Shown: piece by piece, positions 2,788 to 63,956 of the stretch
Layout: every line of letters starts with the position of its first letter
Numbering within the stretch: the stretch's first letter is position 1
Assembly (NCBI GenBank): GCA_019828565.1
Contig: JAHDYR010000034.1
Span: 88,209 to 152,208, forward strand
Reading direction: 5' to 3'
Origin: Carpediemonas membranifera BICM
Lineage: Eukaryota; Protista; Fornicata
Length of the DNA: 64,000 nt
The notes under the pieces: model-generated
What the model saw: only the letters and a program-made list of their open reading frames with translations
The model's database searches: none
What the model was told of the DNA's origin: nothing
Translations under genes and position numbers: made by a program

Positions 2788-2799
2788 GTAATATTACTG

Positions 2800-13161: not shown

Positions 13162-13468
13162 TAAGGGCCAGTAATTACTGATGCCTAAGCCGGGCTAAGC
13201 GAGAATGAATTTATGAGTAAACCTTCTGTGGTGAATATGGTCAGTATTATATCTATACTGATAGCTATAAGCTACACTGGTCGGACGCAACCTGCGAACT
13301 GTTTCTCGACTTGTTCAACACGTCCCAGACCAAACCCCCCCGTGCCATCTCCTACTGCGCAGCCAAAGCCAGAGCCAAGGGTAAGAGAAAGGACCAGCCC
13401 CAGAACAAAGGGGGGTTTCACAAGAAGCACAAGAAGTAGCCCTTGCCACAGATGTTCAGTTCCCGTCA

Positions 13469-15562
13469 ATGAACAAAAAGTGGCCGGTGTGGGCAAGACT
13501 CGGTGCCTCCCCCGAGGTAGTAAGCTGGCTGCGGGATGGCGTCCCTATCCACCTCACCTCTGCGCCCCCTCCACCAGAACCGCAAAGGCGAGTGGACCCC
13601 CGCCTACTCCCGAAGATCGAAGAGCTAGTCGCCAAGGGCGTCCTCTCCCCGTGCCCGATAGACGAACTGCGTCACAGCGCACCCCTGTTCGCGGTGTCGA
13701 AGGGCAAAGACGATGTCCGCCCCGTGCACGACCTCCGAGCCCTGAACGAGGTGACAGCAGAGCTGAGGGTGTTTCGTCTGTTCGGCATCAGACGGGCGGT
13801 CCGCAATCTGCACAAGAACGACTATATGATCAAGATAGACCTGGCATCGGGATACCACCAACTTGGCGTCGCCTCGCGGGACTCCCCCCTCCTAGGCGTG
13901 GTCCTACCGGACGGCCGTGCATTCAGGTACAACACACTCGGCTTCGGATGGACAGCGGCGCCGTACGTGTTCCAGAGCACGACCATACAGCTTGCAAAGA
14001 TCATCGCACACAGGTTCGGAGTGACCATCGCGGTCTATCTCGACGACTTCTTAGTGTCCCATGCCTCCCCATCGTACCTAGCTTCGGTCACCCCGCAGAT
14101 CATCGACCTCATGCTATCGCTGGGGGCGATACCGGGCCTCAACAAGTGCGTCCTCACGCCGACCCAGCAGGTAGACTACCTAGGTGTCCACATAGACACC
14201 GCAAGCGAGTCCCTAAGAATCTCAAAAGACAAGGCCGAGTCCTACACGGCCACGATCGCCGAGGCCCTCCGGGTCGGGTCCATCACAGCCTCAGACTGGC
14301 AGAAGCTCCTAGGCCGTCTGTCATTCTTCGCAGGGACCACACAGTTCGCCCGCCTCGCACTCAGACCACTGCAGGCCACCCCTACAACGGAGACCGTCCA
14401 CCTCTCCAGCCAGATCCGCAGGCAGCTGGCGGCGTGGCAAGTCCTCCTCCGCGATCGCCCACCCAAGAGGTTCGCCGAAGCAAGAGCTGACTGGGAAATA
14501 CGCGATACGCTCCAGATTTCTGTCACCTCAGACGCATCAACGTCCGGCTGGGGAGCATGCCTGTTCAACGGAGAGAAGGGAGCGGCATCACAGGGTGCCT
14601 TCCCCCCTCATCTCAAGGGGGAACACATTGGTGTCAAGGAGCTCTTCGCGATCGCTCAGGCGATCAAGCTCGTGCCCCAGCAGGAGACACGCTCCTCTCT
14701 CACAGTCTTTGCCGACAACTCAGCTGCCATCAGCTGGGTAAACAGACGGGGATCGCCGAACCTCCCCCCAGCCGCACACCAAATCCTACAGGACATCTAC
14801 AACACGGCAGAAACCAAGCGCCTCGACGTCCACTGCTTCCATATTGCCGGACACCTGAACGTCCAGGCGGACAGGCTCTCCAGGTTCGCCAAGCTCGACT
14901 GGTCGTCACCCCGAGAAGTCTTGGAAACCATCATGCGCAAGTGGGGGCCGGTCGAGATCGACGTCACAGCACGCCCCGACAAGGTTCTGGCCTTACCAGG
15001 CTTTGCAGAAATAGCCTGGTCAATCCACGACAACGGCTTCCAGAGGTACTGGAGGGGAGTCAGGATATATCTAGCTCCTCCTATAGCCCTTTTTGGAGTA
15101 ACGTGTCGTCGCCTCCAGACAATACGCGCCTCTACCCAGACTGGGAACCCTCGACACTGGAGATCAGCGGCGATAGTCCTGTGCCCGGACCTCAACTCGC
15201 CCGAGGTTCGAGCCATCAAACGTTTGACACCCCTCAAGATGTACCTCAGAGTCCAGGCGAAACACCTCCTGCAGTCCGAGCTAGCCTGGACAGCGACAGA
15301 CAAGGGCAAGATCCGCTTCGTGGAGCTTATCCTGAGGACCCGTTCCAAGCCCTCCTCGCTGACGACCGACTATCACATTTCAGAAACGAATCGTCGCGCC
15401 GCACAGCAGCGGGGTCGCCAAATTCCTCCAATCCCGCAACGCGAGCCACTCACACGCGCAACAGCTCAAAGAGTTCCTTCTGACCGAGGGTACCACGTCG
15501 GGCCCACAGTCGATACACAGGAAAGGCTACTGGATTTGCGAGGCCGCCCCACTCGTGTCTGA
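13469..15562 (+). CDS. Y1 RT-RNase H-degenerate methyltransferase
   Basis: IDLASGYHQ, LGFGW, YLDD; TSDAS..KEL..ADN..ADRLSR; WGPVEIDV..W..YLAPP. Confidence 0.9.
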   Translation: MNKKWPVWARLGASPEVVSWLRDGVPIHLTSAPPPPEPQRRVDPRLLPKIEELVAKGVLSPCPIDELRHSAPLFAVSKGKDDVRPVHDLRALNEVTAELRVFRLFGIRRAVRNLHKNDYMIKIDLASGYHQLGVASRDSPLLGVVLPDGRAFRYNTLGFGWTAAPYVFQSTTIQLAKIIAHRFGVTIAVYLDDFLVSHASPSYLASVTPQIIDLMLSLGAIPGLNKCVLTPTQQVDYLGVHIDTASESLRISKDKAESYTATIAEALRVGSITASDWQKLLGRLSFFAGTTQFARLALRPLQATPTTETVHLSSQIRRQLAAWQVLLRDRPPKRFAEARADWEIRDTLQISVTSDASTSGWGACLFNGEKGAASQGAFPPHLKGEHIGVKELFAIAQAIKLVPQQETRSSLTVFADNSAAISWVNRRGSPNLPPAAHQILQDIYNTAETKRLDVHCFHIAGHLNVQADRLSRFAKLDWSSPREVLETIMRKWGPVEIDVTARPDKVLALPGFAEIAWSIHDNGFQRYWRGVRIYLAPPIALFGVTCRRLQTIRASTQTGNPRHWRSAAIVLCPDLNSPEVRAIKRLTPLKMYLRVQAKHLLQSELAWTATDKGKIRFVELILRTRSKPSSLTTDYHISETNRRAAQQRGRQIPPIPQREPLTRATAQRVPSDRGYHVGPTVDTQERLLDLRGRPTRV

Positions 15563-16241
15563 CTGACGCCTCCCGACCGCTGCCAAGCAGATAATCGCCG
15601 CCGCCCGGAACGTCGCCTCTGTAGAAGGCCTGACCGGGGGCGCGAAGCCTGTCACGTCCGCGAGAGTCCGCAGGGTCATATACAGACGTCGGAAGTCACC
15701 CCAAGCCTTCCAAGCCGCCCTCTTTTCTGCTCTCTGCTTTATCACCGTGAGTAGAGGCGCAGAGATCTTTGGGCTCAGACGAAGAGACGTCGAGTTCGAC
15801 GCTGACGGCAATGCCCTCCTTTGGTTCGTGAGAACTAAGACTGCCACAGGCGTCCGCAAGCTGGTACCAAACCAATCGTGGGCCAGCTTTAACCCAGCAA
15901 GGGCCCTGAAGGCATGGGTCCCCACGGCAACGCGCCGCGACGACGACGTCATCTGGCGGGCGATCACCTCAACCGGGGGTATTTCACTATCGAAGCCGCT
16001 ACCGGCGTCAACCCTCCGCCACTGGATCCACCAGGCGTACGGCACCGACTTTTCGTGGCACTCATTCCGCAAGGGCGCCACCACGGAGTTGGCGGTAGCC
16101 CACACGAGTACCGAAGTCCTCCTGTCCATGGGGACGTGGGCCTCCACGAAAAGCATGCTGAGATATATGGGCAACGGGGTCCGCACACACCCGGGGGTCC
16201 AGGGACACCTGGCCTCCATCCTTCTCCAACCACCACTTTAA
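15330..16241 (+). pseudogene. Y1 tyrosine recombinase (frameshift near 15410, TGA near 15564)
   Basis: SRGAE, RTKT, HSFRKG, GTW and LRY catalytic motifs; C-terminus nearly identical in protein sequence to the Y3 YR. Confidence 0.85.
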
Positions 16242-16563
16242 ATCTCTGACGGGAGCTAGTGGCTGGGAGAGTTAGGTAGGGTGGGGCTGACACGCGTTAC
16301 AACGGCAGATGTAAGCCACAACAGACATTCTTTGACGCGGTCTCTCGAGGAGACGGTCGGTTTGGGCCCGCAAGCGTGCCTGCAAGCCATTCCACTATGC
16401 TCGTTGCCGATGGGATATCCCCGTTGGGTAGAGCAAGTATGTCTAGAGGCTAGGACAGCTAGCCGGCTGGGTACCACTCGAGCCCATTGGCACCCGGGGT
16501 GCTGAGACGCCCGAGAGGGCGCACGGAAACGCGCAGTTTATGGCATCAGAATTTCGAATGCCC

Positions 16564-19500
16564 TGAAGTCTGGAAACAAGTGTGAAGTGTTTAAGGGGTA
16601 TACCTCCTACGCGGTGATAATGGCTCTAACTGCGTCTACATAGTCATGTAAATACCACACTACCCCTCCTCCATCAGAGCCATGCTTCTATTTCCGACTC
16701 TGACCGACTTTGCGCAAATGCTCGTCAACGCACTTTGCAAGTTGGCTATGGTCCTCCATGTACTTCAATAACACGATGTTGGACCGCATGTCTTCGTCTG
16801 TTGCCACTCTCCAGGTGTCTTCGCTGGCTTCGAATCCCAGCCACCTGCACCTCACTTCCGGTGTCCTGTTGGCGTCTCTTCTAATCCTCCAGTCCACTAT
16901 CTTCTTGATATACGCCTGGCTTCTATCTAAGGCGCATGCTACTTTGGCCTTCTCTTCGCTCCACTCTCCCTCGGCGACTTTCAGGTGAGAAACGTGCTTC
17001 TGATACGTCTTCTTCGTCTCTGGGTCTCGCACAACGTACGAGTTCGCCTTCCCGGGGACCTTCCTGACCACCATCAACGGTCCGCGCCACTTGAGGTCGT
17101 ACTTCTTGCGAATCTCCGCGTCGCGATCCACGAAGACCCAGTAACCCGCTGCCACGCGCGACTCAGGGTGCTGCCGCTGAATGTCAGCCGCTCGCTTCTG
17201 GCTGTCCTGCTTCTTCTTCGCCGCTGTCTGCTCCATATTCCTTCTTCTATTTTCTTCGTTCTGGATCATCCTGCGCGCAGCCTCCACCTCCTCCATCCTC
17301 TGTTCCTTGAGCTTGTCCACGGTCGCTCTGGTTCCATCCGCCACTACCAGTCTCCACGCCGACGACCCGGTCGCCCTCGAACGCGCCGAGTTGATGATGT
17401 TCTGGATCGACGGGAGCAGACCCTTCCATCTCCTGGTCTGCCGTTCATACATCTCGCACCGCAGGTGGCGGTTGACCTCTTTGTTCCACCGCTCGACCAC
17501 GCCGTTCTCCTCGTGGTAGTACGGCGTCGTGTGGTTGACCCGCGCCCCGGTCTCCCTGGCCCACGCGTGAAACTCGGTCGATGCGAACTGCGACCCGTTA
17601 TCTGCTACCCACTCGACCGGCATCGGGAAGTGGGTGAGGTAGAACCTCTGCAATGCCTCGATGGTTTCTCGTGACGACACTGTCTTCAGCGGGACCAGGG
17701 TGACCCATCGCGACGTTTCTTCCACAACTGTCAGGATGTTCCGGTACTCGCCGTCGGCCTCTTTCATGACGATAGTGTCCACGAACACTCGACCATACGG
17801 TCCCAGCGGCTCGCGCGGCGCTCGACTGGTACGGGTCGCCCCCCATACCCGACTTCTGGCACACGGGGCATCGTTTGACCATCGTTGACACGTCAGCTTC
17901 GGCTCCGTCCCAAGACAGTCCGATGTCCTCAAGCTTCCACAGGGTCTGTTGCACCCCATGGTGGCCCTTCCCAGCGCCGTGTACCTCCTTGAACCTCGCT
18001 TCCTTCTGACTCTCCGGCAGTGTCGGGCTCGCCTCCTGTGTCGTCCTGAACTCGTCTACTCTGAACAGCAGTTGCCCCTGCGGTCTGGGCTTGCTCTCTT
18101 CTGTCTCAGCGCCGGCTGCCGCTGGGCCATCCTCGTCTGACTCCGTCCGACTCTGGTCCGGAATGTCCTCCTGCTCCTGCTTCGCCTGCTCCTCTGCGAG
18201 CGCCGCCCTCGATAGCCCGTCGGCGATCTCGTTAAGGCTGCCCGGCACGTGCCCCACGTCGAATTTGTAGTTGGCGAGCTCGAGTGCCCACCGCTGCACC
18301 ATGTCGTCATTGGCGCCCCACACGTACGCGAGGTTCCTGTGGTCACACCACACCTTGAACTCCTGCGTTGCCAGCAGACGCCGAGCCTTGCGGATCGCGT
18401 GGACAATGGCGAATGCCTCCTTCCTATACGTGCTCCACCTGCGCTGCGAGCCGGACAGTGCCTTCGACAAGAACATAATCGGCCGCTTGCCGCCCTCGTC
18501 CTCCTGCATCAGCACCGCGCCGACCCCCTTGTCCGACGCGTCCGTGTACAGCGCGAGTCTCTTCGCCGGGTCCGGGTGTGTCAGCACCGGCGCGCTCGTG
18601 ACCGCCTTCTTCAATGCCTCGAGCCGCCCTGTCCTGGTCCGGCCCCCACGGCGGCGCGTCCTTGAGCTCCATCCTCCTGATCGGCTCGGCCAGGTCCGCG
18701 TACCCCGGGATGAACTTCGCGAAGAAGTTGAAGATACCCAGGAGGGCCCTGACATCGCTGACGTTGTGCGCCGGGGCGAGCTTCTGTACACCCTCCACCC
18801 TCCACTCAGGCACGGACCGTCCCTCCTTCGACACAGTCCAGCCCAAGTACTCTACCTCGTCAAGGTTGAAAGCGCACTTCTTCTCGTTAAGCTTGATCTT
18901 CCGCTCCCTCACCCGGTCCATGACATGCCGGAGGTTGGCCTCGTACTCCTCCACCGTCTCCCCGAACACCAGGATGTCGTCAACGTAGATGAGGCAGGCC
19001 GTCCCCAACATGTCCGCGAACGCCTCCTCCAGCGCTGCCTGCATATGGCCCGCCGCCGTCGACAACCCGAACGGCATCGTGTTATAGGTGAAGTGGCCGT
19101 CGGGTGTGGTGAACGCCAACAGCTCCTGCGTCCCCTCCTCGACCGGCACCTGGTGGAACGCGCTGCTCGCGTCCAGGGCTGCGAACTTGACCTTGCCCTC
19201 CAGCATCGTCATGATGTCGTCGATGGCCGGGAGGTCGTGCTGGGGATCCTCGATGAACTTGTTCAAGCGGATATAGTTGATGCACGGGCGCCACTCCCCA
19301 CCCTTCTTCTTCGCCATGACCACGCGCGACGACCAGGGCGACTTCGACCTACGGATGATCTTCGCCTCTTCCAGTTTCTTGAGGTGCTCCGACAGTGCCT
19401 GCTCAATCTCCGGCTGCCGCCTCCTCGGCAATTCGAAGTAGGGCACCGCATCATCACTCAGACTGATCTTGTACGGCTTCAGGTCTGCCGCGCCGTCGGC

Positions 19501-20886
19501 CGGGCCGAAGCAATCGGCATACTCCTCGCGGATCTGCTCGTCCATCGTGGCCAGCAACTCCTCATCGCCGTCGACGTCGGTCGTGGTGGCCTCCACGTTG
19601 ATCAGGCCCAGCTCGGCAAGGGTCCTGAAGCAGATTGTGGGTTTGCAGCCAGCGATCACGTCCCAGTGGAGCGTGACGTCGACGTCTTTCTTCAATGCGA
19701 GTCTGACCTTCTTCGATCCTCCCGTCAGCACTCTCGCCGTCGAGTTGTCGCCCAGCTTGACCCACCGGTCGGCCCACTTCGTCCGGATGCCCCACTCTCT
19801 GGCCAACTCCGGCGGGATGAAATTGCTGCTAGCACAAGTATCGAGCCGCACCACATGCTCCTTCAGCCCGACACTCATGCTGCACTCCCAAACCTTGCTT
19901 TCCACCCCCGAGGCAAAGACTAAACACTGATCGGGTTTACTGGCGTCCGGACAGTCCTTCGCGACGTGCCCCACCTTACCACACCGATAACAGCGACGGG
20001 TGCCTCCGGCTATCGTCGGCTCTGGGCAGTCCTTGGCCATGTGGCCCCCACCCCCGCAGTTATAGCAGTGCAACTTCTTCTGCCCCTGCTCTTGCTTCTG
20101 CACGTCTTTCTTCGATGTAGACGATGTGGGGGCTCCAACAGCCCAAACTGCTTCATTGCCTCGCGCTTCTTCCTCTCCCACAGCATTACTGATTGCATGA
20201 CTCCGGCTGAGTCAGTGCATGCGTCAACGACGCCCTGGAGTATTGCGTGTTGTCCTTCGTGCTTGCACGCCTCCAAGATCAGCCTCTTCGTTGCATCTAT
20301 CGGGATGTCCTCTATCTTCTGGAACAACACCGCCGCTCTCGCTGAAATCCTGTTGAGCACTTCGCTTACGCTCTTCTCAGGTCCATTCGTCAAAAGCTGC
20401 GTCCGTGCGAACACTTCAGTGGGTAGGACGAGCTCTTCTATGCTCTTCTTCCAAAATGCGTCCTCCTTCTTCTGGTGTGCGCGTCGTGCCTTCTTGACGT
20501 CGTCTTGATGCTTCATGTACTGCTGAGTCGACACCGATCCGTTACCGTTCGTCGCACATGTCGGCTCCACGAACTCGTCGATCCTGGACTTCCCTGTCTC
20601 GCGTAAAACCTGTCTCTTCAACGCAGGCTTGACCAGGGAGTGAAAAGGCTTACGGTGCTTGCCGTCGTCTGCCTCCAGGCTGTACTCGTCGTAGATGTCT
20701 CGTACTCGCATATACTCTTCGATCGTGAGGTCCTTCATCGGTGGACCTATCGTTACGTCTTCTCCCATTGCGTCAAACCGTAGTAATTACTGAAGTCTGG
20801 AAACAAGTGTGAAGTGTTTAAGGGGTATACCTCCTACGCGGTGATAATGGCTCTAACTGCGTCTACATAGTCATGTAAATACCACA
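16564..20886 (-). mobile_element. Full-length chromovirus-like Ty3/Gypsy element G4
   Basis: Identical 96-bp LTRs (16564-16659, 20791-20886), 5-bp TSD TGCCC (16559-16563, 20887-20891), PPT at 16660-16672 on the minus strand. Confidence 0.95.
16688..20768 (-). CDS. gag-pol: G4 Gag-Pol read in four frame-shifted pieces (20010-20768, 18424-20181, 17598-18791, 16688-17959)
   Basis: CCHC knuckles, RLDTCA protease, YVDD RT, YTDASD RNase H, HHCC plus DTI..ADN..VER integrase, RWLGFEASEDTW chromodomain. Frame breaks lie near G/C runs. Confidence 0.85.
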
Positions 20887-21610
20887 TGCCCGAAGGAGCC
20901 CGAGAAGAATAAATCCTTTACCCCCCCCTTTGGGAGTATGAGTTAGGTGGCTAGCCGTGGACCACATGGGTCACAGTTGACACCCGGGAGTGTCGGGTCG
21001 TGCTGCCTGATCCGATTCGATCGGATTCGATGGGCGCGCAAATTTCAAGGATCGTCTCGATCCTCTTCAGAAGAACGAGAATGGCTGATCCGGCCGAAGA
21101 AAACGAGCCGGTCACCCAGAAGGACCTCCAAGAACTGAGAGAAGTTGTAGAACGCGCCCTTCAGGCCAGAAGTGCTGAAGAACAGCAGATAACCCCGATG
21201 ATATCGCCCTCAACGTAGAGGATAACGATGATCAGCAGCTTCAGGACCAAGAAAGCATCGAAGACGAACAGCAGGACGCTGTCGACGACATCTTTGATCC
21301 CTTTGAGGCTCTTGTGAACCTTCCTAACCGGTTCGGCCTTCGAGATGAGGCTAAGTGGCTTTACGCCATGGAACGTGATCTCATCGCTGGCCGCCTTGCA
21401 ACCATTCCTGCTCTGAGGGTCAAGATCTACGGACGCCAGCAACTCCTCCTCCTCAAGGACAGTTGGGACGACGCAACCTCCGAGCGCTGCTCCAACCTCT
21501 TCAAGTCCGCTCCTCCCCGCACTCGGGCCGCCGTCGACATCTTGGTGGCTAAGGCTAAGATCAAGGGCATCAAGAAGCGTGACAATTTTCGCGAAAGGGG
21601 GGGCAGAAGG

Positions 21611-21794
21611 CATACTGTAAGAATGGCTAGAGTCTCCCGGGAGATACTCTGGAGATACTCATGTGTCAACGCTGGTCAAACCTCGCGATCCAGGCGATCT
21701 CAGGCACCTCCAGAACATCTAGAAGGTAGTTATAGAAGCATAAAAGACATGTCTGGCGTCTTGAAGTATCACATGGTGTCAGTGTTGATAAAAG
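21611..21794 (+). repeat. Outer left inverted repeat (inverted copy of the transposon right end)
   Basis: Reverse complement of 34819-35002. Confidence 0.95.
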
Positions 21795-22010
21795 CTTTCC
21801 TCTGGATACCATGGCCGAATTTACTTTCCCAGGTTGTCCGAACGACACGCGACTCCGCGGAATTTCGAGCAACTACTCTCGCGCAGGGGCAGGGGATGCG
21901 TTATGCGATGCGGCGATGGGGCGGGAGGCGCAGGGGGGCTCGGGGACGACGCAGCCTAGAGTGGCCAAGTCAGCCGAGTCGCGACTCCAGATTTCTGTGC
22001 AGGGACCTGG

Positions 22011-23666
22011 TTATAGGTTGAGCTCGGCCCAGCGGGCCTTGCACTGGCTGACATAGTCACTCCAGATGCTGAGGTTGCCCTCCCAGGCCTTCAGGAAGGC
22101 CGTGTCGCGCATGGTTCCCGCCAGGTGCGGCCGTGCAATGGCGTCGCAAAACTGCACCGCCCAGTCCGCGGTCAGGCGGGACTCCGTGGCGCCGCCGACG
22201 GTGGTGGCGGCGACCAGGAAGGTGACGTCCCAGTTGGCGTACTCCCGGGTCTTCTCGGTCTCGGCGTCGCGGGGGTGAAGACCGCAGTAGAAGTCGACGT
22301 AGACGTCGTCGTGGACGACGTTTCCGACCACGTCGCGCTCGCCCCAGACCTTGAGGTCAGCCCGCTTGTGTGTGGGGGCGTCGGCGCTCGTGACGCGGAA
22401 CCTAGGGTGGGTGTCGAGCAGATCGAACTCGGGCTTGCAGTGGGGGATGGGGCGCCCGCGGAGGTCGTCCTGGGTCACGAGATCGTGCACAGCCATCTTG
22501 ATGCTGTCGTGGCGTGCGTTGGTCGCGCCATCCTTCAGGTAGGAGCAGCCGAGGGCGTGGCGCCACGTGATGTCCTGCTGGCCACAGAGGGGGCAGGTGA
22601 CCGGCATCTCGCGGAATGGGGCGATGTTGAGGTGCGCCCGGGTGACGGGGACGAACACGCTGTCGCAGGAGGTCTGCTCGAGGTCGAGGGGGCTCAGCGC
22701 GGCTTCTTTGCGGAGGAGTCTGGCGGCGGGGGCCTCGAGGGAGCTGCAGTCAGAGAGGCCCTGGGAGACCTCCTCGGGGTCTAGGCCGAAGTCGGCGGGT
22801 GTCTTGGGGCGGTACTTGGCCGTCCAGGCTTTTGCAAGCATCGTAGTGAGTGTCTTCTGCGGCTTTTCAGCCTCGATGCTAAACAGTTCCTGGATGGTTT
22901 TGGGCCACTCCTGGCACTCTTCTGGAGAGAACAGCGCCGCCTCCATGTCCCGGGTGATGCCTAGGGCGTGCAGCTGGTGGGCTGCGCCCAAAAATGCACA
23001 CTTCCAGATGAGCGACGGAAGAGGGATACGGAGCCCGTAGTCGGCGAAATCGAGCGCTAGACGCTCTTCGGGTATCTTTGTGACGTCGGATACCTGAAGG
23101 ATGCGTGCGATGGCAGCTCTCAGCTTCCGCTCCAGGCTTTTTGTGCGGCATTCGTGGCCAATCGGGCTCACGTTGCGAAAGATTGCCGAAGGCATCGGAA
23201 GAACGCAAGACCTGATCAGATTGACCGCCACCGAGGCCGCTTTCGGCCCCACTGCCTCGGTCATCTCGGCCACCCGCACGAGCGCGTCCTCCATGCGCGA
23301 GAAGGCCGCGTCCACAGCGTTGGCAACGCCCGCGTCGTCGCCTACGGGGATACCGAGCACCCGTCCGCTTTTTTGGCCCAGTGTCCCCGTCTTCGCCAGG
23401 ACGAGGCACTTCAGTCGGTTCACCCGCATACCGACGGCTCCACACGCCGCCTCCACACGCGCGTAGAATGTATCGATCGTCCGCTGGTCTGCCTGCCGGG
23501 GCAGCAGCCCGTACACGTCGTCCTGGTAGCCGAGGATGGTCGTACTGGGAAGTTGCGACCGGAGGCTGCCGAGGAGGGGCGTCATAGCCAGCGTGAAGAG
23601 GGCTGGGGACAGGGGGTCCCCCTGGTGGATGCCCTCTCGGCTGGCTATGACGTGCCCGGTCGGGGT
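22011..23666 (-). pseudogene. 5'-truncated RLE-type non-LTR retrotransposon ORF (CRE/SLACS-like): RT C-half, CCHC, restriction-like endonuclease
   Basis: GIHQGDPLSP, YQDD, CPLC..HALGC, ARHD, RADL..VYVDF..EK. Cut exactly at the internal TIR at 23667. Confidence 0.9.
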
Positions 23667-23716
23667 CATACTGTAAGAATGGCTAGAGTCTCCCGGGAGA
23701 TACCCTGGAGATACTC
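23667..23716 (+). repeat. Internal 50-bp left TIR (probable true left end of an 11.3-kb unit, 23667-35002)
   Basis: 49/50 match to the terminal 50 bp of the right end; followed by TTTCACA subterminal repeats (23755-23790). Confidence 0.9.
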
Positions 23717-24129
23717 CAAAAAGTGCAAGAAAAAATGAGATTCACTAGAATCTGTTTCACATTTCACATATTTCACAAGAATATGTGAAATGAGAAGCAA
23801 AGCTAGTGAATGTCATTTTTACTTGTCCCTCATCGTCTGTATGGCATCTATAAACAAATCGCGTATCTCTTGCAGCAGAAACTCTGTGTCATTCACCCTT
23901 TTGTTGATTTCTTCTTCCTTTCGCAAGCCCTGAGCAGTTTTTCGGATTATTTTGTAAGAATCTTGTACTTTGGCAACTTCCACGAGCCCTGACGTTACCG
24001 TTTCTACCTTTTGGTGGCTAGTTGCTCGAATCATGATCGACAAATGTCGCAGTTTTAGGTATTGTCAATGCCAGGAGTCTACGTAAATAGACAAATGTAA
24101 CAACGTAAACAGCTTGGATAGAAATTCTC

Positions 24130-25353: not shown

Positions 25354-25396
25354 TGTTTAGTGAGAGATGATCATAAATTGTATATATATCTGTTTA

Positions 25397-26407: not shown

Positions 26408-26595
26408 TGTGCCATTTTTTTTTCATGAATGGCACATTTTGATTTGAAGCAAAGGACAAGCTTTTGATCCAAGTAAAGAGGTATACCTTCATTGCTACAC
26501 TATTTATGCATGCTACTGCAGTATTGTTCGGATCTGATCAGCGATGCGCCTGTTCTTCGGATCGGGAGTTGCGAGAAAAAAAAGAGAACGAAGAT

Positions 26596-27597: not shown

Positions 27598-27627
27598 ACT
27601 TGAAGAGATATCAATTCAATCAATCAT

Positions 27628-49137: not shown

Positions 49138-49210
49138 TCCGATCAGCCGGATTTGAACCAGCGACCCCAGGATCTACAGTCCCATGCTCTGCCAACTGAG
49201 CTATGATCGG
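49138..49210 (-). tRNA. tRNA-Tyr(GTA), intronless, no encoded CCA
   Basis: CCGATCA/TGATCGG acceptor stem, TAGCTCAGTTGG A-box, anticodon loop CTGTAGA, GGTTCAAATCC B-box, TTTT terminator at 49133-49136. Confidence 0.97.
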
Positions 49211-54481: not shown

Positions 54482-55620
54482 GAGCCGCAGGCGTGACACC
54501 CGACAGAACCAGAACGCAGATAATATGGTCCCGGGCTAGCCGTCCTAAGAACGAGGACGTCGAGAGAAAGGTCGCGTCCAGCCCGCTCCTGCTCCGCCTC
54601 GAGAAGGTGACGCGTGATCGAATTGCAACAGAGACCGCAAAGTTCACATTCTTCCGCAACATGACCAGAGAACCAGATGACTCGGACTTCGAGGCCTACC
54701 TCGGACAAAATGACGACCCGGCACCAACCCCACGGGAAGCTGCATGGGAGATCGTACGACAAGCCCACGAGAAAATCCATGACCAGAAGTGGGTGCAAGA
54801 GTTCGAGGAGGTGGCAATCGCGGGGGATGATGACGACACACTGCTATGGTTCATTATAGGGGAGGTGCCCTTCCTCGCCAAAGACTCACTGCTAACGAAG
54901 GAGGCAAACATCAGAGATGGAATGACCGCATTGGGCGAACCCATAGAATGCCCACCACTCCACCGGGCCCTGATCAAGGCTTGTGGCAGATTGGCTGGAA
55001 GGTGCCCAACGTCAAGCCAGCGTCGAACAGGGAAAGCATGGCCAATAGCCAGGGAGACCCTGTCACAGGCTGCGGTGCAAGCAGGCAAGAGCGTCACACC
55101 AGCATTGACTCAAGCAATAGCTTTCGGGCTGGTCGGGTTCGCGACAATATCTCGGTCGGGGGAGATACGGGGGCTCTCAACATCAGACGTCGAACGACAC
55201 GGCAGGGACATCACCATCACCATACGACGCTCCAAGACATCGGATGAACCCATGCTAAAGCTGGTCCCTAACGTCCCCGGAGACGACAACCCGGCAGACT
55301 GGCTTGCGAGACATATGGAAAACCTCCCAGATGAAGGACCCCTGTGGCGCTCATTCGAGGCCAGGGACGCGCTGATCAAGGACAACAGGTCCTCCCTGAT
55401 GAACAGAGACCACCCTTGGAGAAGATGGGAGATGTCCATGGACCTAGAGGAGGTGCTGCGCGCGTCGGGCCACTCATTCCGGAGAGGAGGCGCAGTCCAC
55501 ATGATGAAGCTAGGTGTAGCCCCAGCAGTGATCCAAGCAATCGGGGGCTGGAAACAGCTCGACTCGATGCAGACCTACGTCAGTGAAGCCGTGCGCCTCT
55601 CCACGAGCGCTTGGGTGTAG
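54343..55620 (+). CDS. Y6b tyrosine recombinase
   Basis: SRSGE, RSKT, HSFRRG, GGW, QTY. Confidence 0.9.
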   Translation: MGRHGVGGTVRGQDTHSLQGVLGPGDDVSLGIFLSASAVQARHRALRAAGVTPDRTRTQIIWSRASRPKNEDVERKVASSPLLLRLEKVTRDRIATETAKFTFFRNMTREPDDSDFEAYLGQNDDPAPTPREAAWEIVRQAHEKIHDQKWVQEFEEVAIAGDDDDTLLWFIIGEVPFLAKDSLLTKEANIRDGMTALGEPIECPPLHRALIKACGRLAGRCPTSSQRRTGKAWPIARETLSQAAVQAGKSVTPALTQAIAFGLVGFATISRSGEIRGLSTSDVERHGRDITITIRRSKTSDEPMLKLVPNVPGDDNPADWLARHMENLPDEGPLWRSFEARDALIKDNRSSLMNRDHPWRRWEMSMDLEEVLRASGHSFRRGGAVHMMKLGVAPAVIQAIGGWKQLDSMQTYVSEAVRLSTSAWV

Positions 55621-56462
55621 AAGGACGAGAAAGACGGATAATACATAGAATATGATTGCATAAGGCCCCATTAGACTGTACAATAGGCCATGTAAGAGTT
55701 AAAGATATGATAGAGAGCAGAAGAGAAGGCGGGAGAAAGGAGAAACCGCAGCAGATTGTCACTAATGGTTAATAAGATCGATATATCGAAGACTATCGAA
55801 GAATTGGCCGGAGAGAGTGAGAAAAATGCCGGCGAATGGAAATGGCCAAAACCGCGCACAAAGAATGACTATCAGGCTGTGAAAATATGTGCCTGAGAGA
55901 TGGGCATCAATGGCATGCTTGGAGGCACAGGAGACCAGAGAAATAATTTCTGAAGAGAAAATTTTTATTATATGATGGCGGGATACATCAATTGGAGACT
56001 TCGACCGTAGTCGACTGCAAGTCGGCATACCGTCGTAGACGCGATGCGTAAGTACGCCTCGGGGCGTGGTACAGGCCCAGATGGACTACCGGCCATCTGG
56101 TACAAATATTCGAGAGAGATCGAATATTGACCAAATATTCGAATCAAATCTACGGTCCAGTTCAGACCAATTTTACCAAGGGGTTAAAACCCCATTCCCC
56201 GGTAGTTCCGAGAAGATGGGCGACGCACAGCCCCCCGTGACACTGGAGAGCCTGGAGGTCAGAGCATGTTTCCCATCAATCTCGGGTATAAATTTGATCT
56301 AATCAATTGGAGACTTCGACCGTAGTCGACTGCAAGTCGGTGGCAAGGCCAGCGGAGCCAAAACTTCGGCGCGAGAGGTCGAGGATGATTCGATACGATC
56401 TCAAAGACGGGATCGTGCGTCTCATAAGGGCGGTTCAGTTGTTCAAGAGCGAACTGAAACAG

Positions 56463-56960
56463 ATGGGAGACGCCGCCCAAGAGATCGCAGAGCTCAAAGC
56501 CACCGTTCAACAGCTTCAAGACGCATTTACTGCCGGCGGCAACGTCCGAGAGACAGTAGATCTGCTTCGGCAAGAGACCACCATGACTTGGAAGCGTCCT
56601 GCTTCATCCACTATGCGCGAAGAGGCGGAGTTTCTCGAGGAGATCTACCGCAGCTTCAAGTTCAATCGAATCAGTGGCTTCGCCGTACTCGCTCGCATCT
56701 TCCTCCGTCACCGAGTCCTATGGGTGAAGGACCGCTACGGCTACCTAGCCGCCTCTGCTGTCTCCACCGCGGGCATGGCCGCCCTTGCCGAGCGCCACGA
56801 GATGAACGAGACGGAGATCGAGACTCTCGTCCTCCGCACCCTGTCCAAGATCCCCCGCCTGACCGAGAAGAACACCAAGCCCGGCACCGGACATGACGGC
56901 GGCAACCGGGGTTTTCACGGGAAGAAGCCGAAGCGCGCCGGCACGAAGAACTCAAACTAA
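56463..56960 (+). CDS. Y7 gag-like ORF1
   Basis: W.RP.SS.MREEA..RH..L..KDRYGY pattern shared with the Y8 ORF1. Confidence 0.8.
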   Translation: MGDAAQEIAELKATVQQLQDAFTAGGNVRETVDLLRQETTMTWKRPASSTMREEAEFLEEIYRSFKFNRISGFAVLARIFLRHRVLWVKDRYGYLAASAVSTAGMAALAERHEMNETEIETLVLRTLSKIPRLTEKNTKPGTGHDGGNRGFHGKKPKRAGTKNSN

Positions 56961-57116
56961 GCCAAAAGAAACCACCCATCAAGGATCCTCGCCCCGGTCC
57001 ACAGGTCCTAACTCCTCATCCAACCACAAATCCCACTACTCCTCAATCTCCTCCCCTGTCACCGACGCCTCCTCCTCCCCCGTCCACAGCACCTCCTCCC
57101 CCGTCAGTTCCACCAT

Positions 57117-58980
57117 TTCCCTGCATCAACAGGCAGTGGCGCCTATGGAGGCACTTGGGCGCGCCATCAGAGGTGGTTACGTGGCTACGAGAGGGCGTCC
57201 CGATATCCCTAAGAGCGCACCCTCGTCATCCGCGCCTACCACCAACTCGCGCCAAGGACCGCAAGGCATTCCGCGACCACCTGAAAACCCTCCTGAGCCT
57301 GGGCGCGGCAAGCCCATGCCGGTCTCCCAGCTTGATCTCACCTATCTTCACTGTGCCGAAGACGCCACCAGAGACGCGTCTGATCCACGACCTAAGGGCA
57401 TTGAACGCAGTGTCAACGGAACATCGAACCTTTCGGCTGAAGGGAGTCAAGCAAGCGATGGCCCAGCTTCGCGAAGGAGACTACATGGCACGCTTGGACC
57501 TAGTCAAGGGCTACTACCAGTTAGGGGTCAGGGCCTCGGACAGCCCGCTGCTGGGTTTCGTGGTCGACGGGAGACCCTATGCCTTCAACGTCCTACCCTT
57601 CGGCTGGGGCCCAGCGCCATTCTTCTTCCAAAGGGTGATGCTGACAGCAGCGCAGATCGTAGCACGGATGTTCCCAGGCATCAACTTGACCATCTATCTC
57701 GACGACTGGCTCCTGTCCGGGGACAAGAAGACACTGACCGCTGCGATGCCCAGCATACTACAGCTCCTAGAGAACCTCGGCCTGGTCATCAACAGGAAGA
57801 AATCGCAGCTCTCACCCACGCAGCAGACCGACTTCCTTGGCTTCGTTATGGACTCTGGCCGGCGGGGGATCGCTCTGCAGGACAGCAAGCGGCAGAAGTA
57901 CCTCTCACGAGTCAGGGAGGCCTTGGCATCGGGGGCCACGACACACAGCATGCAGCGGTTGTTGGGCAATCTCGGCTTTGCAGCCATCATTTGGCCGGAG
58001 GGCCGAGCCGCTATCAGACCCCTCCAGAGAGCCCAACTGAAGGACCGCTACCGCACACTCATATCCGGCGAAGCGAGAGAAGCACTGATCCAATGGGAGC
58101 GCCGCTTATCACGGCATCTCCGATAAGGTCCTTCCAAGAGCTGCTTCACCTGTGGGGTCTGTCTCCGACGCTCCACATCACAGCGATGACAGACGCCTCT
58201 CACTCAGGACTCGGCGGAGTGATCACAATCCCGGGCCGTCAACCCTTCACCTTCACCAGGCCGGCCCCGGTGGACGAGCACATCACATTGCTCGAGTTCC
58301 GAGCAGTGGAACAAGCAGTGAGACTGATCCTAGCAGAGCCGTTGACAGACGCGGAGGTCACCATCTACTCCGACTCGGTGGCAGCAGTCAGCTGGTGGAA
58401 CAAGCAAGGCTCAACCAAGGCTCCGCAGTTTGTAGACTCAGTCATACGGGACCTGCTACCCACACTGAGCGAAAGGGCCATCAGGATAAGGCTCCTTCAC
58501 GTCTCTGGTCACTTGAACGTCCAAGCCGACGCATTGTCGAGGTCCGAAACGCTCTCAGCGCCTCGTCGGATCATCGACAGGATCACAGCCGAGTGGGGTC
58601 CCATGCAGAAAGAGATCTGGCCCTCCGAGTGGCTTGGAGCTCGAGTAGAACACAGCCCGTCGACGGTCGACGACAGCAGGTTCATAGACATGGACTGGTC
58701 GACAGGAAGGTGGCTAGCAGTGACACCCTTCGCGCTCCTATCAGCAGTATATGCAAAGCTGTGCCACCTCCACATTGCAAGGACCACACAGCCGAGATCC
58801 CTACCAAGTGCCCTCGTCCTGCTAGTGTCCGACTGCAGATCGCCGACGGCAGTTGCGCTGAGAGAGCTGACTCCGCACCGCATGTTCTTCAGAGTCAAAG
58901 CGGAGGACGCGGACCTATCAGCGATCACCCCCTGCAGGCGGACGGCACATACCGATTGGCGGCCCTGTTTGTGGGAGTGA
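57117..58980 (+). CDS. Y7 RT-RNase H-MT remnant (frameshift at ~58120; no ATG at the RT start)
   Basis: LDLVKGYYQ, LPFGW, YLDD; MTDAS..LE..SDS..ADALSR in the next frame. Confidence 0.88.
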
Positions 58981-59008
58981 CATCTTCACCATCTCCCTCG
59001 AGGGTGAC

Positions 59009-59875
59009 ATGTTAAGTGGATTCGTAGACAAGCGCCACGTCGCGGGTGTGCTCCAACAGTTCTCGGGTTTCTGGGGTGCCCTTCCACCTGACACTAGCAG
59101 CATCGAAGTCATAAGAGCATGGGCCAAGGACCAAGCCTCGAGGGTCACCAAGGATACAATCACCTCGAAGTGGAGCCTAATCCGTCGCTTCTTCGGCCGG
59201 GTGTCATCATGGGAACCACCGCTGGACGCCGACGCAGTCATCAAAGAGCAGGCAAGGAACGCTCTTGGGAAGCTTAGAGGGCCTGCTCTCCCGATTCGCG
59301 CGCACACTCTGGTTGACAGGCTTCGGGCTGCCCACCCTCAGTCTCGAGACGACGACCTTTGGAAGGAGGCTTTCGCCTTTGCACTGACCACCTACGCCAC
59401 GACCTCCAGGCCAGGAGAGATCTATGCCCTGCATGTTGGTGACGTTAGAGCGGAGAGCGCGCGCCGCGGGCTACGAATCTCCATCCACGGCACTAAGACC
59501 CGGCGAGTGGTCGTTGAGAAGCTCGTCCCGAGAGTCGACGGGGAGCTAGACCCGGCTCACTGGCTATCTGAGGTCCTAGTCAATAGGATAGATGCAGGCG
59601 CGGTGGCCGAAGACCCTCTCTGGTCGCACCCCTACTCAGTCATTGAGGACCAGGTGAAGGGCATCATCTCCACGCAGGCTCGGCTGCACGGTCTGCGCCG
59701 CGGGAGCGCGGCTGACCTGGTTCTGATGGGTATCCCTATCCCGGTTGTTGCGGCGAAGGGCACATGGGCTGACCAGAACTCATTGATCCGTTATGTGGAA
59801 GACGTGCTTCGCCTGGACTACAGCACGTCCGTAGCCCCGTTCAGAGCCTTATTAGAGAAGGATAAGAAGAGATAA
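59009..59875 (+). CDS. Y7 tyrosine recombinase
   Basis: SRPGE, GTKT, HGLRRG, GTW, IRY. Confidence 0.9.
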   Translation: MLSGFVDKRHVAGVLQQFSGFWGALPPDTSSIEVIRAWAKDQASRVTKDTITSKWSLIRRFFGRVSSWEPPLDADAVIKEQARNALGKLRGPALPIRAHTLVDRLRAAHPQSRDDDLWKEAFAFALTTYATTSRPGEIYALHVGDVRAESARRGLRISIHGTKTRRVVVEKLVPRVDGELDPAHWLSEVLVNRIDAGAVAEDPLWSHPYSVIEDQVKGIISTQARLHGLRRGSAADLVLMGIPIPVVAAKGTWADQNSLIRYVEDVLRLDYSTSVAPFRALLEKDKKR

Positions 59876-60763
59876 GCCCCTCAAAGCCATTGAGGAGTGG
59901 CTGCGAGGGGTATGATTGTGGGCCTTAGTGAGGCTAATCATAAACCTTGATGGACAAGGTGATATTGGCTATTTGGAAGCCGTTAAGGCTTTAGAGTCTC
60001 TTTTAGGCTCGATGGTTCAATAATTGCGCATCAGATGAAGAAATTGCGCAACAAAAGTGAAAAATCGCTAGAACTCCTCAACGAAGCGCCGTTGAGGGCT
60101 ATAGACCTCGTTTTGAGCTCTTTGTGTTGGCAGATGCAATGAATTGCAGCCGGGGCACAACTTGCATGAAAGACATCGAGAGTGTCTTAAAGTGCACCGA
60201 TCGGCTGCAATCGCTTGGGCGGCGACTGGTTCCCTGTGGGAATGGACGGAGTCTACCGGATCGTCAGCCTGTCTGACTGGCAAGGCCAGCGGAGCCAAAA
60301 CTTCGGCGCGAGAGGTCGAGGATGATTCGATACGATCTCAAAGACGGGATCGTGCGTCTCATAAGGGCGGTTCAGTTGTTCAAGAGCGAACTGAAACCGC
60401 GGGGCAGCCTTGCTCCCGATCCCCTCCTTCGGAGGGTGACGCTCGGCATTACGTAAGGTCGAGCGAGGTAATTTACTCCGGCTTACACAGAGATAGACCC
60501 GGGACGATGCGAGAACGCGACACAATAAATTACCTACCCCCCCCTGTGGGAATGGACGGAGTCTACCGGATCGTCAGCCTGTCTGACTGCCGAGACCAAC
60601 GGCGACGTGACAATTCCGCGACGGGGCGGAGACACGCCAAGTGCGGCGTCCTGGGCAAGCCTCCGAGATCCGGGAGATCCGAGGTGAATCTTTATGAGAT
60701 TTGATAGGCGATTTGATTGACGATTCGTTTGGCGGGAGGAGATCGAATCAGGCAGAAGGAGAG

Positions 60764-61282
60764 ATGGAAGGAGAAGCAGAAGAAGTCAGAGCCCCTGACG
60801 AGCAGGGGAACGTCCAACCAGTCGAAGAAGATGAACTTAAGGTCCTACGCAAGGAACTACTCCTCATGAACGCTCGTGTGCAGGAGCTGCAGAGGAACGC
60901 CCGCAACGAGGGCTGGTCCAAGCCTCAGTCCTCCTCAATGCGCGAGGAAGCTGATTGGATCGAGCGCATATACCGTATGATGCGCTACGAGGAGCCGATC
61001 GACATCGACGTCATCTTGCTCGAGCTCTACGCACGCCACCGATCTCTCGACATCAAGGACCGTTACGGCTACCAGGCAGCCGCAGCTGTGAGCATCGCTT
61101 CAAAGGCTTTCATCGCCACCCCGCCGAGAGACGCCCAACACGCCGATGTTGCCACGCGCCAACTGGAGCTCGAGCAGCGCATTCTTCACACGCTGGCAAA
61201 ATTTCCCCGTCTGGCCCAGGCTCAGCAAGAGCGCTCCGCCTTCAAGGCGGGCAAGCCCGGACCGAAAAGAAGCCGCCAGTAA
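60764..61282 (+). CDS. Y8 gag-like ORF1
   Basis: WSKPQSSSMREEA..RHRSLDIKDRYGY. Confidence 0.8.
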   Translation: MEGEAEEVRAPDEQGNVQPVEEDELKVLRKELLLMNARVQELQRNARNEGWSKPQSSSMREEADWIERIYRMMRYEEPIDIDVILLELYARHRSLDIKDRYGYQAAAAVSIASKAFIATPPRDAQHADVATRQLELEQRILHTLAKFPRLAQAQQERSAFKAGKPGPKRSRQ

Positions 61283-61369
61283 CAAGCCATCTTCAAGATC
61301 TCTCTCACCACCTCTCACACTCGCACATCCCTCCTCAACGTCTCTCTCCTCCTCCGAGACTCCTCACAT

Positions 61370-63238
61370 TTCCCACGATAGCCCGTCATCAGCTCTGGTC
61401 CGCCTCGGGAGCGCCCTCAGACGTGGTCTCGTGGATCGAGGCAGGCGTCCCGATCGAGATCACCGGGTCGCCACGTCAGCCCAAGCCCCGACCCCTATCG
61501 CCCGCGGCCTCCGAGTGCCTCCGACCACTCATGCAGGAGCTCGTCAAGTCCCAAGTCGTGCGCATCTGCAGTCGCAGGCCTCGTCTAGTCTCCCCATATT
61601 CACTACTCCAAAGTCCGACGGCTCCCCGCGACTGATACACGATCTCAGAACGTTGAACGACGTCACGAAGGAACGGCGGGTGTTCCGCCTTTTCGGCCTC
61701 AAGCGCCTCTTGGAGATCGCAGCCCCGGACGACAGCGCAGTGAAGCTAGACCTACGCTCAGGCTACTACCAACTCGGCGTGAAGCCATCGGACAGAACGC
61801 TTCTCGGCTTTGCCTACGCCGGCCAGTTCTACCAGTTCCAGGTGCTTCCCTTCGGCTGGACAGCAGCGCCTTATGTGTTTCAGCGCGTCATGATATCCGC
61901 CGCGTCCATCATATCCCACCGCTTCGGGGTGAAGGTAGCTGTATATCTGGACGACTGGGCCGTCCTAGCACCGCAGAGCCACCTCAAGCGTGTAGTCCCC
62001 GGTATCGTCAAGTGCATGCAGCAGCTAGGCCTCATCCTCAACCTGGCCAAGTCAATGCTGACTCCTGGCAGGGTGATAGAGTACCTAGGCTTCAGGGTCG
62101 ACCTGGCCGCGAGACGCATCACTATCACGCAGGCGAAAGCCACCAAGTACGCGGCGAAACTGGACGAAGCTCTACTCGTGCCACCATCAGGGCGGGAGTG
62201 GCAGTCCCTCCTAGGCAAGCTCTCGTTCGCGTCTATCGCATGGCAGGACGGCAGGGCATGGCTTCGACCCCTTCAGGTCTCCGCAGCCCCCAACACTCCC
62301 CAAGCAGAACGAGCTCTGCAAGAGTGGGCCAGACGAATGAGGAACGTGCCTCATCGGTCGTTCGACAGCCTTATGACCCTGTGGGGCATGCATCCGGCGA
62401 TAGATGTCACCGTTATATCAGACGCGTCGGACGAGGGGATGGGAGCTGTCATCCGGCAGCCGGGTGCCCCCGATATACAGCTTTCCCTTCCCGTGCCACC
62501 CTCACTAGCACACTTGCATATCACCGCCAAGGAGTTCCTGGCCTCGGTGACCGCTGTGCGCCGTCTGCTCGAGTCCTCGGGCTTAGACCTGCAGGGCAGG
62601 GAGATAACGGTGTTCTCCGACTCGACGGCGGCAGTTGGTTGGCTCAACAAGCAGGCCTCCACTCGCGCGCCACCAGAGGTGGTCTCCGAGTCGCTGTCCT
62701 TCTTCACGCTCCTATCGGAGAGAGGCGTCAGCTTGAGGGCTCGACACACCGCAGGCCACCTGAATATAGCCGCCGACTCGCTGTCAAGGTTCACCAAGAC
62801 GGACTGGCAAACCCCGGCGGGCGTGCTCCGCCGCATGTTAGACTCGTGGGGGCCGGCCGAGGTCGACTTGACTGGTCACCCCACGAAGGAGCTGCTCCTC
62901 CCGTCGTACACCAGCCGCTCCGTGCCGTTCTCCGGAGACGGTCTGAACCAGAACTGGTGCGGTCGGAGAGTCTTCCTTGCGCCCCCTGGGCCATGGTCCC
63001 AAAGGTGCTAGCCAAGCTCTACCGTATCATAGAGCCTCTAGGAGACCGAGACCCTCGACAACTACGCTCCGTAACGTTTCTGGTCTTGCCGGACATCAGG
63101 TCCGCTCCTATAAAAAGGCTGGCGCCCGAGAAGATGTACTTCTCAATCCCAGCACAGCCAGGGTCAGAGCTGCCAGGCGCCAATGGAAAGCACAGACTAG
63201 TCGCCCTGTGCCTTCCGACGCGTTTGTCACAGGCCTAA
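61370..63238 (+). CDS. Y8 RT-RNase H-MT remnant (frameshifts at ~61595 and ~62985)
   Basis: LDLRSGYYQ, LPFGW, YLDD, ISDASD..KE..SDS..ADSLSR, WGPAEVDL. Confidence 0.88.
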
Positions 63239-63956
63239 GCGAGCATGCGATGTTCGGTGGCCCTCGCTCGGGCCACACGGCAAGACTACGCGAGGACCCT
63301 TGCGGGCTTCCTGGCCTACGCGTCCACACTCCCCCCGGTCGAGGCAGCCAAGCGCTGGGCTGACGAACAGGCCCACACCGCTGGAAAGGACCGCATCATG
63401 GCCAAGGCCGGGGTGATAGTCAGGTTCGCCCACCGCGTGCTTCCAGACACCTACGCCCTCGCCGAGGACTTCTGGCCAATCGTAGCAGAAGCAGCTACGG
63501 CCTCGACGACAGCAGCACACGGCCCCGCGGCACCTGTCAGGCTCAAGTGGATCAATGCAGTCCTCACCCGGACACCCGAGGACCTCATGTGCCACCAGTG
63601 GCGGCAGATAATGACATTCGCGCTGACGTGTTATGCCTCCGTGTCGCGCCCTGGTGAGGTCCTGGCCCTATCACGCAGGGACATCATCGAGACCCCCGAC
63701 GGCATCGTCATCACCATCCGGCGGACTAAGACCGGCATGACCAACGTCCGAAAGATGATTCCTCTCGCGCAGGGCGACCCCCTGTCGCCAGCGACCTGGC
63801 TACATGACCACCTGGCCGCCATAGGGGACGTTGATGTACTTGAGCCTATCTGGCGGACGACGGACCAGTACGGCAACCTCGCTCCCGGTCACCGCCCGGT
63901 GGCATTCTCCGAGCTGGCGGACAGCTTCAAAAGCCAGTTCGGACATGGCGCAAGGC

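Follow-up and report, generated by a model that had tools for sequence, protein, structure and literature searches.

Organization of the retrotransposon array

The stretch of Carpediemonas membranifera DNA analyzed here (64,000 nucleotides, hereafter the window) carries a head-to-tail array of retrotransposons that encode a reverse transcriptase (RT) and a tyrosine recombinase (YR), and a tRNA gene, tRNA-Tyr(GTA), is embedded between two of them. Nine RT+YR elements were located within positions 13277-64000 by tblastn with the RT and YR segments of the window itself and by Pfam searches of the long open reading frames (ORFs), and all nine were on the + strand, as a first-pass annotation of this DNA had stated. 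That annotation counted about seven families; YR identity separates approximately eight, or seven if E1 and E4 (70% nucleotide identity) are merged. E1, E3, E4, E5, and E6 form clade I, with YR domains that are 38-54% identical to one another (75% for E1 and E4), and E7a, E7b, E8, and E9 form clade II, with YR domains that are 25-35% identical to those of clade I. The last position of the window, 64000, corresponds to C35:152208 (C-numbers denote contigs of the assembly, and C35 carries the window) and is the contig end, which lies inside E9; the clade II half of the array is therefore cut off by the assembly.

The tRNA-Tyr gene occupies the interval between E6 and E7 (49115-49212), which was absent from the earlier list of junctions. 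It was predicted by ARAGORN and matched Rfam RF00005 with 63.7 bits. E6 ends 23 nucleotides (nt) beyond the 3' end of the tRNA gene, with a T-run terminator in between, and the A start of E7 is located 2 nt from its 5' end. All clade I elements (E1 and E3-E6) are found on the 3' side of the gene and all clade II elements (E7-E9) on its 5' side, and every YR element in the window is antiparallel to it. The features of the window are listed in Table 1.

Table 1. Features of the window, with terminal repeats (A, B), internal region (int), and spacer (x) named as in the text. LTR, long terminal repeat.
Feature	Position	Strand	Description
Outermost clade I remnant	1626-1772	+	E3-like B end, then solo E6-family A (1686-1772)
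Gypsy chromovirus	2661-7239	+	127-nt LTRs; Pfam RVT_1, RNase H, rve, Chromo
Gypsy chromovirus fragment	7821-10469	+	Pfam
Gypsy chromovirus	10145-13161	-	Pfam
E1, clade I	13277-16464	+	5'-truncated unit; final repeat B1, no tail
Solo tail, E5 family	16471-20956	+	A-x-B, 162 nt (16471-16562 + 20887-20956), Gypsy-interrupted
Gypsy	16563-20886	-	4.3 kb; 97-nt LTRs; TGCC duplication; inside the solo E5-family tail
E3, clade I	20957-37890	+	Two parts (20957-21610 + 35003-37890), DNA-transposon-related insertions 21611-35002 between
2-kb insertion	21611-23666		Shares the terminal repeats of the 11.3-kb DNA transposon
DNA transposon	23667-35002		11.3 kb; 50-nt terminal inverted repeats; SET-domain ORF; interrupts E3
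E4, clade I	37891-41874	+	Complete: A1 37891-38051, B1 41510-41555, A2 41556-41716, B2 41823-41869, followed by 5 nt of the E4 A
E5, clade I	41875-45468	+	Unit alone (A-int-B), no tail
Filler	45469-45486		18 nt, between E5 and E6
E6, clade I	45487-49114	+	Complete, innermost: A1 45487-45572, B1 48820-48876, A2 48877-48961, B2 49058-49114
tRNA-Tyr(GTA)	49138-49210	-	ARAGORN; Rfam RF00005
E7a + E7b, clade II	49213-56340	+	Tandem of two ORF1-deleted units (99.8% identical) plus one A-x-B tail
E8, clade II	56341-60589	+	Complete: A1 56341-56460, B1 60232-60277, A2 60278-60397, B2 60542-60589
E9, clade II	60590-64000	+	Reaches the contig end
Overlapping open frames	35000-37699 and 34944-37073		
Overlapping open frames	38016-41372 and 38401-40746		
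Further stretches with overlapping frames	42363-44120, 45987-47789, 49525-51843		
Spacer x with (A/G)TAAAT	41717-41822, 48962-49057, 60398-60541		A further case at 4112-4144 of stretch L013

Association with tRNA genes across the genome

The C. membranifera assembly comprises 24.2 Mb in 69 contigs with 57% GC and 8300 genes, and was built from >52x long reads (PMC8516963). A host gene for xanthine dehydrogenase located immediately upstream of the window encodes a protein 99% identical to the NCBI entry for C. membranifera. Genome-wide tests were based on match coordinates, and sequences were compared in the window and in 18 stretches around other YR clusters that had been picked before the link with tRNA genes was recognized. 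The tRNA list consisted of the best 63 of about 497 candidates scored, and the YR list was merged from the best 98 of 234 and the best 150 of 341 matches into 206 sites; both are lower bounds.

Neighboring YR domains were overwhelmingly co-oriented, by 63:1 at distances of up to 5 kb (p=7e-18) and by 95:8 at up to 15 kb (p<1e-17). The array is real, and its arrangement goes well beyond chance. A YR domain was present within 6 kb of 43 of the 63 scored tRNA genes, compared with an expectation of 7.7% (p=4e-33), and nearby YR domains were antiparallel to the tRNA gene by 63:6. The side of the gene depended on the clade: among YR matches with a listed tRNA gene within 20 kb, 67 of 69 clade I matches were on the 3' side and all 14 clade II matches on the 5' side (Fisher p=5e-14). 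An antiparallel tRNA gene was located exactly at the clade boundary in all eight arrays for which this boundary was in hand, the window included, and six further boundary tRNA genes in the fetched arrays were those for Asn, Lys, Ser, Arg, Leu, and Met. The partial stretch from C68 contained clade II elements alone, and its boundary lay outside the stretch. Arrays at dozens of dispersed tRNA loci argue against the single centromeric cluster that had been considered earlier.

Other genes that RNA polymerase III (Pol III) transcribes were also inspected. No YR domain of the merged list was found near the five 5S genes, which are spaced by 9.5 kb in ribosomal DNA units (C23:8851-47168), or near the single sub-threshold U6 match (C39:312760), and both samples were too small to judge.

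The distances between element ends and tRNA genes were obtained from genome searches with the element ends, and all of the resulting lists are lower bounds. For clade II, the A start was 1-3 nt from the tRNA 5' end at at least eight tRNA genes for the E7 family and at least six for the E8 family, that is, 1-3 nt upstream at no fewer than 14 different tRNA genes for these two families together. For clade I, the B2 end of the E6 family was 11, 11, 23, 34, 38, 41, 48, and 75 nt past the tRNA 3' end (at least eight tRNA genes), the B end of the E5 family was 18-42 nt past it (at least five), and the B1 end of the E4 family was 38 nt past it (at least one). Taken together, these three families had ends 11-75 nt downstream of no fewer than 13 tRNA genes. 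The B1 end of the E1 family was removed from the tRNA gene by one tail length plus about 30-50 nt at at least six genes, and a copy consisting of the unit only ended 17 nt past the tRNA 3' end at at least one gene. Throughout the genome, and beside different tRNA species, insertions are thus concentrated at a constant short spacing from the tRNA gene, as is the case for retrotransposons that target Pol III genes.

The tRNA gene is the target of these elements and not their cargo, because the same family was found beside differing tRNA species with unrelated flanks. The same observations rule out the tRNA as a primer site carried by the element. It is highly improbable that the association arose through random or regionally biased insertion followed by selection that retains copies beside tRNA genes in one orientation. 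The genome is compact, with 8300 genes in 24.2 Mb (PMC8516963), and tRNA flanks are classic safe havens (PMC5006619), both of which would suit retention by selection. However, selection cannot yield a precision of 1-3 nt at 14 tRNA genes, a strict division of the clades by side, and a fixed orientation, and copies that are 99.2-99.8% identical are too young for much purging to have occurred.

Junctions between elements

All seven junctions listed in the first-pass annotation proved to be a B end beside an A start, separated by 0-18 nt. Two of its boundaries were revised. The B end of E5 had been placed at 45458 and was moved to 45468 on the basis of the B1-A2 junction of its own family, which leaves a filler of 18 nt. 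The segment 16471-20956, previously taken for a YR copy, is instead a solo E5-family tail of 162 nt that holds a 4.3-kb Gypsy element on the - strand. All copies begin with A and finish with B, and the inserted forms are units, tails, or units plus tails. This rule fits a joined molecule that is opened at its B|A junction and inserted with no duplication of the target.

The two clades differ in the precision of their junctions. Heterologous junctions in clade II were exact in all pairs seen, with the B end followed after 0-1 nt by the next A start. Those of clade I were looser; some contained fillers of 5-18 nt, and in others the newcomer had entered the final 10-28 nt of the B of a resident copy, and the rest of that B lay toward the tRNA gene. 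The clearest example is at C6:458018-461687, where an E4-family unit splits an E5-family B2 and both halves are kept, the last 15-20 nt of the split B2 being located between the E4 unit and a tRNA-Lys gene. The target at this site resembles the E4 junction (TAG-N-TGGC), and clade I B ends have a common TGAG..TAGG..GCTAGC-like motif. Insertion points within the E5-family B were found at -28, -20, -10, 0, +3, and +9, and such a spread is not that of one fixed crossover site.

Virgin flanks and tRNA sequences showed no significant likeness to the B|A junctions of the elements, and only chance 7-9-mers matched. An attP-like copy of a tRNA sequence within the element junction was ruled out for the same reason. 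As a separate observation, TCGAGCCC is present in the opening 20 nt of A in the E5 family (41875-41895) and agrees over a 9-mer with the B-box region in several tRNA genes (E=0.16), probably by chance.

It had been proposed that resident element ends act as att sites for unrelated families and that the locus grows by polar accretion of cassettes. In this explanation, B|A or B|flank ends would be att-like sites and the tRNA gene merely the landing place of the founder. The split E5-family B2 with both halves retained and its TAG-N-TGGC likeness, the exactness (to 0-1 nt) of heterologous clade II junctions, and the motif common to clade I B ends all speak for it, as do the exact junctions of same-family tandems (E7a/E7b and three E4-family copies on C18) and the reported preference of DIRS-1 for existing DIRS-1 copies (PMC7192593, PMC5006619). 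On the other hand, the tRNA gene is found at the clade boundary in all arrays with the boundary in hand, many tRNA genes have an element docked directly at a stereotyped distance, the clades are kept apart by the tRNA gene (67 of 69 on the 3' side and 14 of 14 on the 5' side), and insertion points in one resident B range from -28 to +9. Furthermore, exact clade II junctions would be expected just as well if insertions recurred at -1 to -3 relative to the tRNA gene. Resident ends are thus an unlikely explanation for the arrays as a whole. The array is indeed a polar one of unrelated families, and some newcomers are located inside a resident B, as in the C6 split; however, the anchor of the array is the tRNA gene and not a resident element end, and att-like ends are not supported as its organizing principle. 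Resident B ends may serve as cross-family landing sites that are at most secondary. The exact same-family tandems, the clade I B-end motif, and the TAG-N-TGGC likeness would fit either a degree of recognition of resident ends or homologous recombination, as reported for DIRS-1 (PMC7192593, PMC5006619).

Some junctions recur. The composite junction of an E6-family B2 lacking 16 nt with an E1-family A was observed at both C16:60307 and C13:887909, and a block on C5 is duplicated, with its junction at C5:345768 and C5:353073; therefore, some array growth occurred by block duplication. These recurrences, together with copies that are >99% identical and an array that stops at a contig end, could be read as chimeric repeat joins in the assembly or as segmental duplication being the main source of the arrays. 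This is extremely improbable, given that heterologous B|A junctions have no common sequence for mis-joining, that the same grammar recurs on many contigs with different tRNA species and different fillers, and that the assembly was built from >52x long reads (PMC8516963).

A different arrangement was seen at approximately C6:452634-454783, where two arrays of opposite polarity are positioned head to head, separated by 2.1 kb of DNA without annotation. The innermost elements at this site are both 5'-truncated, that of the E4 family at position 1325 and that of the E5 family at position 527. The layout reflects either an inversion or a later insertion.

Probable integration beside tRNA genes and possible order of arrival

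Repeated integration in a fixed orientation beside tRNA genes probably builds these two-sided polar arrays. The positions, distances, and orientation of the elements, the split of the clades by side, and the absence of sequence likeness of junctions to tRNA genes are observations, whereas a circular intermediate, Pol III tethering, and the order of arrival are inferred. The break on the element side is always located at the B|A junction, as would be expected if the YR opened a joined, circular cDNA there. On the target side, the tRNA gene rather than a particular sequence would determine the position, likely through tethering to the transcription complex of Pol III. In clade II, integration would bring the A start to a point 1-3 nt upstream of the 5' end of the mature tRNA, which is at or close to where Pol III starts; in clade I, it would bring the B end to a point 11-75 nt beyond the 3' end of the tRNA, immediately behind the T-run terminator. 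All integrations would be antiparallel to the tRNA gene. Each newcomer would insert between the tRNA gene and the previous arrival, or in the last few nucleotides of the B of the latter, and older copies would be displaced outward. In this way, a single intact tRNA gene would come to be flanked by two co-oriented, abutting half-arrays. Tandems of one family, such as E7a/E7b and the runs of E4 and E6 at other loci, probably arose from recombination between a circle and a resident copy. On balance, it seems plausible that the YR, an enzyme type that ordinarily recognizes specific sequences, has been re-aimed by Pol III tethering in this way in a deep-branching protist, with the two sister clades sharing out the start site and the region past the terminator of the tRNA gene and with B ends as possible secondary sites. 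In that case, Pol III transcription reading through from the tRNA gene would enter the clade I half in the antisense direction.

The state of the copies bears on the order of arrival. The disrupted elements of the window are its outer clade I elements, with a truncation in E1 and nested transposable elements in both E3 and the solo tail. E1 lacks the 488-nt 5' part that the copies on C16 and C6 have, and it is the most diverged copy, with 14 private changes per kb. The E1- and E5-family copies that are farthest from the tRNA gene have the most private changes in their own families. Apart from the question of order, approximately 0.9 kb of ORF1 is missing from the E7 copies, and the E6 copy of the window lacks 75 nt at 46809-46812 that are present in all other examined copies of the family (C5, C6, and C16), and its RT ORF is broken there.

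Several points weigh against this reading. The correlation between rank from the tRNA gene and private mutations is weak (rho=0.28, p=0.18), and an E6-family copy at rank 4 has zero private changes. At some junctions, repeated insertions of one family agree to the nucleotide, as in the three E4-family copies on C18, which a landing window of 60 nt would not by itself predict. The E6-family B is truncated by 16 nt on C16 and C13 with no remainder on the tRNA side, and so not all events look conservative. Furthermore, 67 of the 150 clade-assigned YR matches had no listed tRNA gene within 20 kb, and the tRNA and YR lists on which the association rests are both lower bounds.

Structure and classification of the elements

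Split direct repeats in the order A1-int-B1-A2-x-B2 were identified by self-alignment in E4, E6, and E8, and E1- and E5-family copies at other sites have them too. The spacer x, between A2 and B2, ranged from 33 to 144 nt. RVT_1, RT_RNaseH/RNase_H, and Phage_integrase domains were detected in E3-E8 (Pfam), and the YR alignment contained the R..K..HxxR motifs; the elements thus encode a tyrosine recombinase in place of a DDE integrase. DIRS1-like and PAT-like elements carry an adenine methyltransferase domain, but no Dam/MT Pfam match was found in any long ORF at E<=0.01, an absence that is weak evidence. The repeats within the YR elements were exclusively direct, and the only inverted pair in the window belongs to a nested DNA transposon. 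Based on domain content and repeat structure, the elements are Ngaro-like YR retrotransposons (order DIRS); the inverted terminal repeats and internal complementary region that define DIRS1-like elements were not found in them. Searches for proteins homologous to the 1118-aa ORF of E4 and for contigs encoding the YR ORF of E5 returned nothing, and these blanks are uninformative.

In every family, a second frame was open over 1.7-2.3 kb across the RT/ribonuclease H ORF, and in E3 and E4 it reached the YR domain (Table 1). An overlap of that length is unlikely to have arisen by chance, judging from its extent, and recalls the overlap of ORF2 and ORF3 in DIRS-1. The spacer x of every tail contained an (A/G)TAAAT motif 5-12 nt ahead of the C-run that opens B2, which is likely a polyadenylation signal and which we take to resemble the AGTRAAY signal of the Giardia type.

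Nested insertions

The window contains four Gypsy chromoviruses, two on each strand, as the first-pass annotation had noted in reporting both orientations. The three located at 2661-13161 are nested in or beside the outer array. The 2-kb insertion next to the DNA transposon in E3 encodes a 552-aa ORF on the minus strand (22014-23669) with a partial RVT_1 domain, and relatives of this ORF with 28% identity were found on the + strand inside the C5 array (approximately C5:350838-352319 and C5:358143-359624). This ORF was considered as a candidate inverted YR element and was rejected: it bears no likeness to the RTs of the YR elements and is located in the nested block 21611-35002.

Comparison with known systems

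Targeting of tRNA genes is a classic example of convergence on safe havens for integration and is known from integrase-bearing LTR and endonuclease-bearing non-LTR elements. Reviews of Pol III targeting list LTR and non-LTR elements only, and describe DIRS-1 as targeting its own copies. A full-text search of the literature retrieved no report of a tRNA-targeting YR retrotransposon, a blank that is not proof of novelty. The main text of the C. membranifera genome paper mentions neither transposable elements nor tRNA genes (PMC8516963), and a search for papers that mention both the species and retrotransposons found nothing on tRNA-linked YR elements. If confirmed, the arrays described here would add a further enzyme class to this convergence, the recombinase of YR retrotransposons, the target choice of which is poorly understood, with targeting that is near-nucleotide in precision, fixed in orientation, and independent of sequence. 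Sister clades with opposite side preferences would provide a natural pair for mapping the determinant, for example ORF1 or a YR extension, and the arrays would account for the main repeat architecture of the C. membranifera genome.

Tyrosine recombinases, tRNA landmarks, and ordered co-oriented units are also features of prokaryotic integrative elements that use a tRNA attB and of integrons. In the former, attP and attB share sequence with the 3' part of the tRNA gene, and integrons have one resident integrase with an attI site, at which promoterless cassettes with an attC site each are captured. In contrast, the arrays of C. membranifera showed no likeness between junctions and tRNA genes, insertion took place outside the gene on both sides, and a recombinase is present in every unit. 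The likeness to integrons drawn in the first-pass annotation holds only in part; the arrays do not fit the definition of an integron, as an RT and a YR are encoded by each unit, the array is anchored on a tRNA gene, and the insertion points in resident ends vary.

Among YR retrotransposons, the Ngaro types of Cafeteria burkhardae share the A1-[ORFs]-B1A2B2 structure, a gag-like ORF1, RT/ribonuclease H, and a YR (PMC8547959). They insert into virophage EMALEs with family-specific preferences that are possibly set by ORF1 (PMC8547959). They differ from the elements described here in that their target is virophage DNA, that no tRNA association or polar arrays have been reported for them, and that the C. 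membranifera elements have the extra spacer x. DIRS-1, the YR element of Dictyostelium discoideum, is thought to integrate a circular cDNA and forms clusters by insertion into existing copies (PMC7192593, PMC5006619), and the same-family tandems of C. membranifera may arise likewise. Papers on Dictyostelium describe this element as one that does not target tRNA genes (PMC5006619, PMC6101501). It has inverted terminal repeats, an internal complementary region, and centromeric clusters, whereas split direct repeats and polar arrays on dispersed tRNA genes were observed here.

Other Dictyostelium retrotransposons offer a closer parallel in target choice. The TRE5-A, TRE3-A, DGLT-A, and Skipper-2 lineages share out the upstream and downstream flanks of tRNA genes in a compact genome (PMC5006619, PMC6101501), and TRE5-A inserts about 50 bp upstream of the tRNA gene (PMC3159450). 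Clades II and I of C. membranifera divide the tRNA flanks likewise; the Dictyostelium set consists of non-LTR and Gypsy-type elements, in contrast to the YR elements found here. In precision at the start site, clade II is comparable to Ty3 of Saccharomyces cerevisiae, a Metaviridae LTR retrotransposon that integrates a few nt from the Pol III start of tRNA genes (PMC5911963; bioRxiv 10.1101/2021.07.27.453949), the A starts of clade II being located 1-3 nt from the mature tRNA 5' end. The two systems also differ, with a tyrosine recombinase, no evident duplication, a fixed antiparallel orientation, and a putative tethering in C. membranifera. The DDE integrase of Ty3 is tethered to TFIIIB, produces a target duplication, and inserts in either orientation. 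The tRNA-anchored, two-sided polar array formed by two YR clades is a variant of Pol III-gene targeting.

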